A model generated the notes under the pieces. It was not told the DNA's origin and searched no databases. It worked only from the letters and a program-made list of their open reading frames with translations. From Auanema rhodensis (lineage: Eukaryota > Animalia > Nematoda), in contig OZ059899.1 of assembly GCA_964057225.1 (NCBI GenBank), positions 7,378,001 to 7,442,000 of the forward strand: DNA of 64,000 bases. Direction: 5' to 3'. Positions 56,896 through 64,000 of this stretch are shown here, one piece after another (position 1 is the stretch's first letter; each line of letters starts with the position of its first letter). The position numbers and the translations under genes are program-made.

Positions 56896-57458
56896 ATGGC
56901 TGTAACAACTTCGGAATCACTTCATGTTTTTCTTAGCCTTTTCTGCTTATTTTCATCAGCGAATTCTATATTAGTTCAAAGTGTTGGAGTTCGTGGTCGC
57001 CTTATGTGTGGAACTCAGCCAGTTTACAACGCTACTGTTCAAATTGTAGAACAACCTTTTTTCAGTAAGAAATATTCAAACTGCTTAATTTTTGAATTGG
57101 GTTGCCCAATTTTCAGGATCTGAAAAACTTTTAGCTACAGTTACAACTGATCGACAGGGTAATTTTAAATTGTCCGGAACAAGTACTGGAATACTGAACG
57201 TAAATGTCAATTTTAATGTTATTCATGACTGTGATGATGAAGTTCGGGTAAGTTACCTCCTTGAAAAAAAACTTTATAAGCTTAAATGATTAAATAAGAA
57301 AACTAGAACTTATAAAATACTTTCAGCCTTGTTTCCGAAAAGTTACCCTAGGTATTCCACCAACAGCAGTTACCAGATCACAAGTTGTAGAAAAGTATTT
57401 TGAAGCTGGAAGTATGAATATGGCTTTTCGCTATCCAATTGAGAAACGAGTCTGTTAA
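56896..57458 (+). CDS. Nematode transthyretin-like (TTR-52/DUF290 family) secreted protein (3 exons)
   Basis: Signal peptide, QSVGVRGRLMCG, TDRQGNFKLSG, IHDCDD..PCFRKVTLGIP, FEAGSMNM..EKRVC*. Confidence 0.9.
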
Positions 57459-59137: not shown

Positions 59138-60378
59138 ATGTCTGACAGCCAACAATATGGAATCGCTACTGATTCTATGACCTTGCAACGTTTTGTACTC
59201 CAAGAGCAAAAAAACCACCCAGAAGCTACTGGTGATTTCTCTGCCCTTCTTACTTCCCTTCTTACTGCAGTTAAGGCTATTGCCAGCGCAACTCAAAAAG
59301 CAGGTTTAGCTAAACTGTTAGTTAAACTTTCATTAAAAATTAATTTTGTTACTGTTCAGCTATGGTATTGCTGGAAACACCAATGTTCAAGGAGAAGAAG
59401 TCAAGAAGCTTGATGTTCTCTCTAACGAACTGATGATCAATATGCTTAAATCTAGTTATACAACTTGCTTATTAGTTTCGGAGGAAAATGATGAACTTAT
59501 TAAGGTATATTGTAATGTATGAAACAAGTTATGTTTGTTTTCAAGGTTGATGAGAAATATCGTGGTAACTATATTGTAACTTTCGATCCTCTTGATGGTT
59601 CTTCTAACATCGATTGTCTTGTTTCTATTGGAACCATTTTCGGTATCTATAGAAAGGTTAGTGTTTTCTTAATTGGTTTTGTCTTTTACTTTTATATCTT
59701 AGATAAACAATGAACCAACTCTTGATGACGTTCTTCGTCCAGGACGTGAAATGGTTGCAGCTGGTTATGCCCTTTATGGATCTGCTTGTATGGTTGTCCT
59801 TTCTACTGGAAATGGAGTTAATGGATTCACCCTTGATCCCGTAAACTTTAAAAGATATTGATTATTTTATAATTTATTTATTCAAGTCAATCGGAGAATT
59901 CATTCTTACTCATCCTAACATGAAATGCAAATCTAAGGGATCTATCTATTCTCTTAATGAAGGTTATGCTAAGACCTGGAGTAAAGGATTAGCTGAATAC
60001 ATCCGTACCAGAAAGGAGCCTGAGGCAGGAAAGAAAGTGATGGGACAACGTTATGTTGGTTCCATGGTTGCTGATGTTCATCGTACTTTATTGAATGGAG
60101 GAATCTTCCTTTACCCACCAACTGCTTCTGCACCTAATGGAAAGCTTCGTCTTCTATACGAATGCAATCCAATGGCTTTCATCATGGAACAAGCAGGAGG
60201 ATTAGCAACAACCGGAAAAGAATCAATTCTTGATATTCAGCCCACTGCGGTATAATTTCTAATAATAGCAAAAAAAAGTCATATTAACGTTTAGATTCAT
60301 CAAAGAGCTCCTATCATTCTTGGTTCAAAGGATGATGTTGAAGAGTGCCTTGAATATCTCAAGAAATATGATAATTAA
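59138..60378 (+). CDS. fbp-1: Fructose-1,6-bisphosphatase (6 exons)
   Basis: [92 protein letters not shown]. Confidence 0.97.
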
Positions 60379-60552
60379 TAATTTTACCATAACAGATTTC
60401 TATTAAAGATTATTTGAAATTAGTTCTGAATGATAACGTACGTCTCTCAACTCAAAAACTTTCCATTTTTTTGCTTGTGTCGTTCACTATAGTATCGAAA
60501 ACTTAAAAGTTTATGTAAAAATAATAATAAAAGTATATTTTTTTAAATTTTG

Positions 60553-63500
60553 TTATGTTTGATTGATTGAGCTGAACGTGTAGTTTCTAGCGAAGTGGAT
60601 GTATGTTGGAACTTTGATGCAGTTGATCTTGCTATCACCAACTAGAAAGATCATTCTAGTGTGTTGTATTTTTGAACATGATACTACCTTCTTTTTTCTT
60701 CCCTTTGCGTGTCTCAATGAGATATTACTGTACTCTTCTAATATATCAAATGTTTGACCATTAAGTTTTTGAATAAGTACTAAGCCAGTCTAAATTAATT
60801 AATTTGGAAGTTGTTTCTTTTAAACTGTAAATTAACAAACAGTTTTATCGTCAACCGGTTTTACTCCTATTATACATGGACCTTTAATGTAGCAATCTTT
60901 TGTAAGACTATTCTCATTCGATATTGCCGTTAATTCCGTCCAACATCTGAAAAGGAAAAGAATTTAAATAATTAATTATTTCAATGAGAATAATTTTGAG
61001 TAATTAAAGGATCATCTGCTCAACAGATCTTCTCCGCTACCTGTTATCAATTTTAAGGAAAAGAATTGAAAACGAAGGACAGAGGAAAATATTTTGTATC
61101 AAATGAAGAATTATATTTACCCAATAATAGCTATATGTCCGTTTTGTATTTCAATATTTTTTGGTTCTTCAATTATTTGACTACAAGCAAGTATAAATGA
61201 TGTTTCATTATCAATATCCTTATCCTTAGTTGTAACACTTCTATATAAATAAGAATATGTTAGATATTATCTTCTTCATAAGACTTACACATTGAAATGA
61301 CGTATTTCATTTGATAGTCCACCAAGTTGAATGACTTGGGCAACACTTTGAGCTATTGTTTCATCAATGTTTAATAAATCAAACAAGGTTTGACTGTTGA
61401 TTTCAACTAATTCACATTCAGTAGTAGTTTCGTATCTAATAAATATTAAATTATTTTCATAATTACAGGTTTAACTAACCTTCGTTTTGGAAACATAAAA
61501 GGAAAGAGATTTGATTTATCCATGCCTTGAAGAAGTATATTCCTCTCTCCAATAAAATTTCCTTGTGAAATATAAAACTCATGCAATTTGGAAGAACGAG
61601 TAGGAAGCCACTCTGACACTCTTGATAAAAATTTATATAAAGTTTTAATAGTACAACATAACTAACTTAACCATGCCTTTTTGAATATAGAACATTTTAT
61701 TTCCATATGTTTTAATAGTTTGCTGAGATCTGCATACGGTCGTCTGAAAGTTTAAAGCTTTCTTCAAAATCATCAATTTATGAATTTACTTGTGCATAGC
61801 TCAAAATTGCAAGTATGAAGTCAATTACATCCTTACGGTTTTTTTCAGATAATTGTCGAATCCATTCGATTACTTCTAAATTCTCTCTATAAACAATAAT
61901 ACTTAAAAAATGAAAAAGAAGGGGAATCTAGAAAATAAGATGGTTTAGTTTAACAAAAAATCCTCTTTAAATAAATTATTTCAAATGATACTTGAGGTGT
62001 GATTCAGGTACAACTAGAAGATCATCTACTTTTTCTCTCATATGTGATACAACATTAGTCCATGTTTCTTCAACTTCTGGTGGGAAATATCCTTCACTAT
62101 ATGTTTTATATAAAATTGAATTAAAATATTTTTGAAATCAGCTTACATTTTCATATCATTTAATAAACTTTTTAGTGTAAATGACATCATCCTTACGGTT
62201 TGTCTTGTCTTAATCACAGGTATTACGCTAAAACCATCGTTGTTTTCTTTGAAATATAATCTTACAAAACTATTTATTATCTGTAAAATGTATAATATTA
62301 TATTAAATTTTAAAAAAAATTAAACTATACACTAGTTAGTTTTTCAATTTCTCTTGTAACAGTTCTATAAGCTTCTTCACTATATAAATCTGGAGATATA
62401 TGAGTTTCTTTTAACATAATATTAAAGAAATGTAAAACAGCCATACGAACACGATCATATGTTAACTAAATTATTATTTTATTTTTATTATAATCATTTT
62501 AAAAAAACCTTTCTTTTTACTTGAGACTCTCTTAAAGTTATAATTGTAAGAGGTATGGCTCGTATTAATCGGAATGCACTACATGTTACTAATGAACCAA
62601 TGAAAATATTGAAAACAATAGAACAAAAAACTAAAATATTACAAGAAAAAAAGATTTAAATAATTAAATATTTTCAAACTCACGATCTTGCTGTATATCA
62701 TTATTTACACATTTTCCACCATCTATCATAAGAAAAACAGATATAAAAGCAATTGACATCAATATTGGAACAATTGAAGCAGGAACAATACCCTTTATAA
62801 TAAACTAAAATATTTAAAATTTTAATTTTATATACCAAATAATAGCTTCCATATCTTTTATTCTTATATGATTGATGTACTATATATATCATTTCAACTA
62901 ATGATGTAATCCATAATATCCAAAAATTAGCCAAATATATTGCTGCGGATGGAATTGGCTGAAATTTTAAAAACAATATGAAATTAATATAAACCTTAAT
63001 GATACTGTTATATAATAAGTCCATAGTATCATTACAGTAAATCCACATATGATAAATGTATGAAGAATCCACCATCTAACAATATATAAAATAAAATAAT
63101 TAAGATTCTATAGAAACATTTCTATTTTTCTATTTTTAATCCTTTCAATCGGTTTCATTTCACTGAATAATCGATGTTTTCCTATTGTACAAAATCTAAG
63201 AAATTCAGTACAAGAATATCGTTCAAGGCAACGCTGTGATATCATATAATAAAATATAAATTATGCTAATTGATAATCATACTTACATACAGTACTTCAA
63301 CAACTCCACTAATCCATTTTGTAAACAATGATGGTTCCATTATTGATAATTGATCTTAATTATAATAATAATATTAATTTTATAATGAATAATACCATAT
63401 ACCTTCAATATGGGATGGAATAATATCACCCTCATCGATTCCATGTTCAAGAACTGCTGTCAGTATATGCATAGTTTTACCGGACACAGCACCTTGTTGC

Positions 63501-63989
63501 CAATAGTCATATGCCTAAATCAAAATTTTTAAAGATTTAAATTGATAATTAAAATTACTCGAGCCAATAGCTTTCCATATAAAGCTGTTTTTGCATTCAT
63601 AGCATCAACTTGTTTCATCTGTATGGCATCAGCTACTACCGAATCCAACCATGAATTCGAATCTGAATCACGTTCATGCATCAACTATAAGATTCATAGA
63701 TTATATAAATAATATAATAAATCTTACATTCTTTTTTTCAATACGCTTAAAACAGTTGAGAATTTCTTTTTCAGCTACAACCCAATTGGTTCCAATGTGA
63801 TGAGCACAATTTTTTCTTTTCATATTGTGAAGTTTTTTAAAAAACTTCAAGAAAAATATAATATTATACATAATAATATAAATTACTTCTTTTTCTATAT
63901 GATTATTTATTCTTGAACATGTTTCCATTACATATCTTGAACGTTTTGTTGTTCCTTCTCTTGCTACTATAAGACGATAGGTAACTCCC
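60553..63989 (-). CDS. SLC9C/sNHE (SOS1-related) Na+/H+ exchanger-like protein, C-terminal part (transport domain expected beyond window end)
   Basis: Spliced translation in order: GVTYRLIV (end of last TM), HIGTNWVVAEKEI, NAKTALYGKLLAR|AYDYWQQGAVSGKTMHILTAVLEHGIDEG, four hydrophobic helices ending SAFRLIRAIP, LTYDRVR, IKTRQTVRMMSFTLKSLLNDMK|SEGYF, CNBD-like MFYIQKGMV|KV..GNFIGERNILL..YETTTECEL, beta-roll-like HIAIIG..YIKGPCII. Confidence 0.7.
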
Positions 63990-64000
63990 TGAAAAATAAT

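Follow-up and report, generated by a model that had tools for sequence, protein, structure and literature searches.

Does the genome of a nematode carry a gene for an SLC9C protein, a member of the sperm-type Na+/H+ exchangers? Nematode sperm are aflagellate. According to comparative work, soluble adenylyl cyclase (sAC), sNHE and CatSper are retained or lost jointly, with species that lack sAC keeping neither of the other two (PMC6660944). A sequence-only reading of the present locus had assumed this loss for nematodes, and the literature agrees: C. elegans is reported to be without sNHE (PMC6660944), and sAC is reported to be absent from nematodes (PMC12867704). No report of a nematode SLC9C was found in the literature searched.

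We analysed 64,000 nt of DNA from Auanema rhodensis (GCA_964057225.1, contig OZ059899.1, 7,378,001-7,442,000 of the forward strand), referred to below as the window. Its G+C content is 29%. The DNA had been taken for nematode in the sequence-only reading, and an exon at 56896-57120 (+) fits this origin: it encodes a signal peptide along with the beginning of a nematode transthyretin-like (TTR-52) domain (Pfam E = 0.002 over the first 24 positions of the profile). A multi-exon fructose-1,6-bisphosphatase (FBPase) gene is located at 59138-60380 (+; Pfam E = 2e-40). It is convergent with the SLC9C-like gene described here, and the 3' ends of the two are about 170 nt apart.

A transcribed and spliced gene at the end of the window

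The visible 3' portion of the SLC9C-like gene occupies 60553..63988 on the minus strand and comprises 20 exons, with 791 codons and a stop. The exon chain was rebuilt from three-frame translation and splice-site inspection, and all 20 exons are AG...GT bounded:

63988-63887, minus: exon 1
63844-63728, minus: exon 2
63684-63559, minus: exon 3
63514-63403, minus: exon 4
63354-63287, minus: exon 5
63233-63118, minus: exon 6
63075-63006, minus: exon 7
62958-62836, minus: exon 8
62804-62684, minus: exon 9
62630-62509, minus: exon 10
62465-62331, minus: exon 11
62280-62147, minus: exon 12
62096-61992, minus: exon 13
61886-61790, minus: exon 14
61743-61667, minus: exon 15
61620-61480, minus: exon 16
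61435-61289, minus: exon 17
61240-61121, minus: exon 18
60946-60841, minus: exon 19
60789-60553, minus: exon 20, the last, ending in a stop codon
60555-60553, minus: stop codon TAA

A run of 791 stop-free codons has a chance expectation of about 4e-31 at the same base composition. G+C content is 31% in the exons and 17.5% in the introns, and the median intron measures 47 nt. As the upstream end of the model is a splice acceptor (63990-63989, preceding the first visible exon), the gene extends past base 64000.

Transcription and splicing are both documented, and the visible part has an intact frame. RNA contigs from four public runs of the same organism contain 15 of the 19 introns as exact GT..AG joints, while the loose ends of contigs fit a 16th; the donor sites at 61667 and 62509 were fixed by the same kind of evidence. 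A candidate 16-nt micro-exon was ruled out by the frame and by the RNA, which shows a 174-nt intron instead. The shortest intron of the gene, of 31 nt (62805-62835, minus strand), is demanded by the frame and is among the four that have no RNA joint. One unspliced contig of run X3 (window 60797-61108) spans exon 19 and both flanking introns; it could represent pre-mRNA, DNA carry-over or an antisense transcript.

RNA contig depth on the gene is low, at 2-5 compared with 17-389 on the neighbouring FBPase gene. Together with the loss of sensor residues described below, this is what would be expected of a gene in decay that has lost its function but not its transcription. Such decay is very improbable given a frame that stays free of stops for 791 codons over 20 exons with intact splice sites.

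Protein layout and comparison with SLC9C1

The strings quoted in the sequence-only reading are all present, in the same order, in the protein spliced from this independent exon rebuild. In the numbering of the 791-residue fragment, GTNWVVAEKEI is at aa 52, AYDYWQQG at aa 116, LTYD at aa 360 and KTRQ at aa 428, and IIG...IKGPCII spans aa 675-705. The fragment is arranged as follows:

63123..63988, minus: aa 1-212, soluble, probably helical (top 19-residue hydropathy 0.89)
63793-63761, minus: [DN]W helix, placed against the SLC9C1 alignment
63514-63425, minus: YW..G.L motif, placed against the SLC9C1 alignment
63233-63120, minus: basic linker preceding the first TM (10 K/R in 38 aa)
62536..63122, minus: aa 213-350, four hydrophobic helices forming a voltage-sensor-like (VSD-like) insert, from hydropathy
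61823..62535, minus: aa 351-505, soluble, without a hydrophobic segment, from hydropathy
62465-62454, minus: KLTYD
62211-62191, minus: IKTRQTVR
61294..61822, minus: aa ~506-636, cyclic-nucleotide-binding fold (CNBD), from CRP alignment and SLC9C1 blocks
61556-61432, minus: phosphate-binding cassette region, FIGERN...DKS...PKRRY
60556..61293, minus: aa 637-791, C-terminal tail, probably beta-rich, with IAIIG and IKGPCII
60888-60865, minus: IKGPCII

Hydropathy thus places a four-helix insert between soluble regions, and the charged flanks of the helices are compatible with an in-out-in-out-in topology. The insert has no pore: the top 19-residue hydropathy past aa 350 is only 1.19, so the fourth helix is not followed by S5-pore-S6.

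In the cryo-EM description of sea-urchin SLC9C1, TM13 is followed by ICH1-4, a flexible and positively charged S1 linker and a peripheral S1-S4; the long S4 enters the cytoplasm, where it is clamped by ICH3-4 and ICH5-6; there is neither an S4-S5 linker nor a pore; and the C-terminus brings a CNBD, followed by one more helix and another beta-roll domain (PMC10620092). At the level of layout, the order of parts in the fragment matches this description. The motif order had been put forward as a feature of SLC9C1, and the motifs were indeed found in the same order in a published SLC9C1 alignment. The reference was the alignment of SLC9C1 from five species in the supplement to Windler et al. 2018 (PMC6052114), used as OCR text of a figure, in which there are errors. 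The counterparts are listed below, with SLC9C1 first and the SLC9C-like protein second:

ADADW / ANADW: GTNW
SYW[KR]Q..G.L: DYWQQGAV
RLTKALIP (S4 end; R..[RK]A.IP): RLIRAIP
LS.GYD (L[ST].GYD): KLTYD
VKT[RK]Q.[IV]R: IKTRQTVR
Y[IL]..GN.IGE: FYISQGNFIGE
[RK][AS]P[FC][LI]I: IKGPCII

In addition, IKGPCIIGVKP is the best match in the entire protein for the SLC9C1 block IRSPCLISRTV. The offset between sea-urchin numbering and the fragment stays at 463-478 throughout aa 49 to aa 708, a span of about 650 residues, and S1 and S4 coincide with their published SLC9C1 positions at an offset of about 470. Counted from the S4 proline, KLTYD and IKTRQTVR are spaced at 17 and 83 residues, compared with 18 and 78 in sea-urchin SLC9C1.

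The likeness was quantified by scoring short sea-urchin blocks, ungapped and with BLOSUM62, against the protein and its shuffles, which were made globally or inside 10- or 20-residue windows. All 14 blocks in a free co-linear chain gave z 4.5-5.9, a signal that comes chiefly from the CNBD blocks. In the same free chain, the 7 SLC9C-specific blocks were not significant (z 1.4-2.0) and the VSD blocks alone were at chance (z 0.5). When the offset was anchored on the CNBD (478 ± 15), the 7 specific blocks scored 101 versus 35-41 ± 12 in shuffles (0/5000). Because these 7 blocks had been picked after both sequences had been seen, 9 further family-conserved blocks were added that were not picked for likeness; by themselves they gave no signal at the anchored offset (z -0.5), and all 16 non-VSD non-CNBD blocks together gave z 3.3-3.7 (2-5/5000 shuffles). 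A free scan of offsets returned 470 as the best value with all 25 blocks (z 7.6), with the 21 non-CNBD blocks (z 4.0; 0/400 shuffles) and with the 18 that are neither CNBD nor VSD (z 2.5; 6/400 shuffles). The SLC9C-specific tests are significant only when position-constrained. Homology of the whole C-terminal half to SLC9C1 is probable from these comparisons, which outside the CNBD combine modest statistics and architecture with no clean database match.

Overall, likeness to SLC9C1 is too low for exon-level HMMER matches. Pfam searches with all 20 exons singly returned chance-level matches only, and PDB searches with seven exons singly returned nothing save a weak CAP match of exon 16, with no SLC9C1 or SOS1 chain; these exon-by-exon blanks say little, since the exons are just 22-79 residues long. 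Scanning metagenomes with exon 20 and with exon 17 gave no match, and neither did a homolog search with 99 stop-free residues from the end of the window. An exact look-up of a 124-aa ORF gave no record, and an ESM Atlas query with exon 16 gave noise. For the tail (aa 637-791), no second CNBD was detected with CRP as query, and no relative was detected by the CRP comparison or among 1.8 billion representatives searched with the last exon (0 matches). As the last exon and the window-end stretch were both unmatched, the proteins of this genome may be absent from large protein collections.

Several known systems share parts of this layout. Plant SOS1 (NHX7) belongs to the CPA1 exchangers and carries a long cytosolic tail in which there is a CNBD-like domain (PMC6660944). 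SOS1 has no predicted VSD, whereas the protein described here has a 4-TM insert and therefore does not have a SOS1-type tail, which is free of membrane inserts. In HCN, CNG and KCNH channels, too, a CNBD is preceded by an S4-type helix, and a pore-less remnant or relative of one of their subunits would account for four TM helices, basic residues in the fourth and a CNBD downstream. These channels have S5-pore-S6, however, and in the SLC9C-like protein the stretch that leads from the fourth helix to the CNBD has neither a hydrophobic segment nor a P-loop. Kinship with channels is also made improbable by the roughly 210 soluble residues ahead of the first helix, by the lack of any channel chain among the PDB matches of the seven exons searched, and by a cassette block that is 7/11 identical to SLC9C1 (EDYITVGNVIG in sea urchin, EFYISQGNFIG here). 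Other families with 4 TM and a CNBD-like domain, for example CNNM (DUF21, CBS pair, CNBH), have roughly the same order of soluble, 4-TM, soluble and CNBD-like parts. Membership of such a family appears extremely unlikely: no DUF21 or CBS match was seen in Pfam at E up to 10, in single-exon searches of a sensitivity limited by length, and no CNNM structure was matched by the seven exons searched in the PDB.

The voltage-sensor-like insert and the cyclic-nucleotide-binding domain

The register of S4 was anchored on the conserved proline after this helix and compared with published SLC9C1 residue numbers. The sites that bear on voltage sensing are:

62571-62560, minus: RLIR, followed by A-I-P, at the inner end of the fourth helix
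62895-62893, minus: E259 in the second helix, the charge-transfer-centre Glu, kept
62795-62793, minus: K282 at the expected S3 Asp site, where sea urchin has NKFD

Only two basic residues are found in the S4 register, R339 and R342, both directly ahead of the conserved Pro. In sea-urchin SLC9C1 their counterparts are R5 (Arg812) and K6 (Lys815). The K1 to R4 positions are occupied by N, G, V and S, and the charges that sea-urchin SLC9C1 has there are gone. Further differences from SLC9C1 are the replacement of S3 Asp767 by Lys, the missing polar and acidic residues of S1, which here has no acidic residue at all, and a very short S1-S2 loop. In addition, S256 sits where the S2 aromatic residue of the charge-transfer centre is expected. 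The insert has neither a basic ladder in S4 nor a full charge-transfer centre, of which the Glu alone (E259) is kept. Since just the innermost two basic residues are left in S4 and Lys stands in place of the S3 counter-charge, the protein has probably lost classical voltage sensing. A degraded VSD has been reported for the sNHE of a ctenophore, and degraded or voltage-independent variants have been discussed for a ctenophore and for human (PMC6660944).

The CNBD fold proposed in the sequence-only reading is statistically supported. In a local phmmer comparison, residues 34-115 of E. coli CRP align with residues 530-618 of the fragment (11.8 bits; E = 7e-6 for a single target); this score is reached by 0/2000 shuffles, none of which exceeds 6.9 bits. 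The beta-roll of CRP/CAP is alignable over 82 residues, with the Gly-Glu of the cassette included; CRP is a soluble transcription factor, unlike the SLC9C-like membrane protein. Exon 16 alone produced a weak PDB match to E. coli CAP that falls exactly at the phosphate-binding cassette (E = 0.38), and the sea-urchin SLC9C1 CNBD blocks reach z ~4 against the protein.

The cassette itself keeps its Gly-Glu and is otherwise unusual. In the CRP alignment, Lys577 stands at the phosphate-binding Arg (CRP Arg82); in the SLC9C1 alignment, Arg 588 or 589 is found at the phosphate-binding site, only past an insert of 9-12 residues. The candidate binding residues are K577-S578, or R588/R589 following the insert. 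As the cassette differs from that of SLC9C1 by either an Arg to Lys change or this 9-12-residue insert, the protein probably binds cyclic nucleotide only weakly or in another way. The label "voltage- and cAMP-gated", which had been attached to the gene, is not upheld by an S4 with two basic residues only, an S3 acid changed to Lys and a non-canonical cassette.

Degenerate sensors would also be expected of a lineage-specific protein with a VSD-like 4-TM unit and a CNBD that lacks an exchanger, either as a new architecture or as a transporter-less descendant of SLC9C, and the 5' part of the gene lies outside the window. The first visible exon starts at an internal acceptor, however, so more coding sequence lies upstream, and the co-linear offset to SLC9C1 is kept from aa 49 to aa 708. 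An exchanger-less protein seems unlikely on these grounds.

Identity of the gene and its significance

Judged from its C-terminal half, the gene is rather probably a divergent SLC9C homolog, whose exchanger region would lie past base 64000. It would add a member to a known family, in a phylum said to be without that family. The earlier proposal that a highly diverged SLC9C survives in this genome is borne out in part: the C-terminal layout, the CNBD and the co-linear motifs speak for it, and the similarity outside the CNBD is modest (z 2.5-3.7). The use suggested along with it, in the pH control of amoeboid MSP-based sperm, is speculative.

On the SLC9C reading, the fragment would be the regulatory C-terminal half of a divergent sperm-type Na+/H+ exchanger, and the missing 5' part would encode the exchanger itself. 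In sea-urchin SLC9C1, cytoplasmic helices clamp the long S4 and the CNBD, and together these gate a 13-TM exchanger. The nematode protein would most likely keep the cytoplasmic and VSD-like scaffold for dimer architecture and autoinhibition, with its exchanger under the control of a factor that is neither voltage nor cAMP. The chances seem evenly divided that the gene is an expressed nematode SLC9C with lost gating charges and an altered cAMP site, free of the CatSper-sAC-flagellum module and under another control logic.

A nematode with an expressed SLC9C-type gene would, if confirmed, break the rule that sNHE, CatSper and sAC are retained or lost together. It would likewise provide a natural case of the SLC9C scaffold operating without a functional voltage sensor, and would bear on how sensors are coupled to the exchanger through the cytoplasmic helices. 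The gene might also matter for how nematode cells control their pH.
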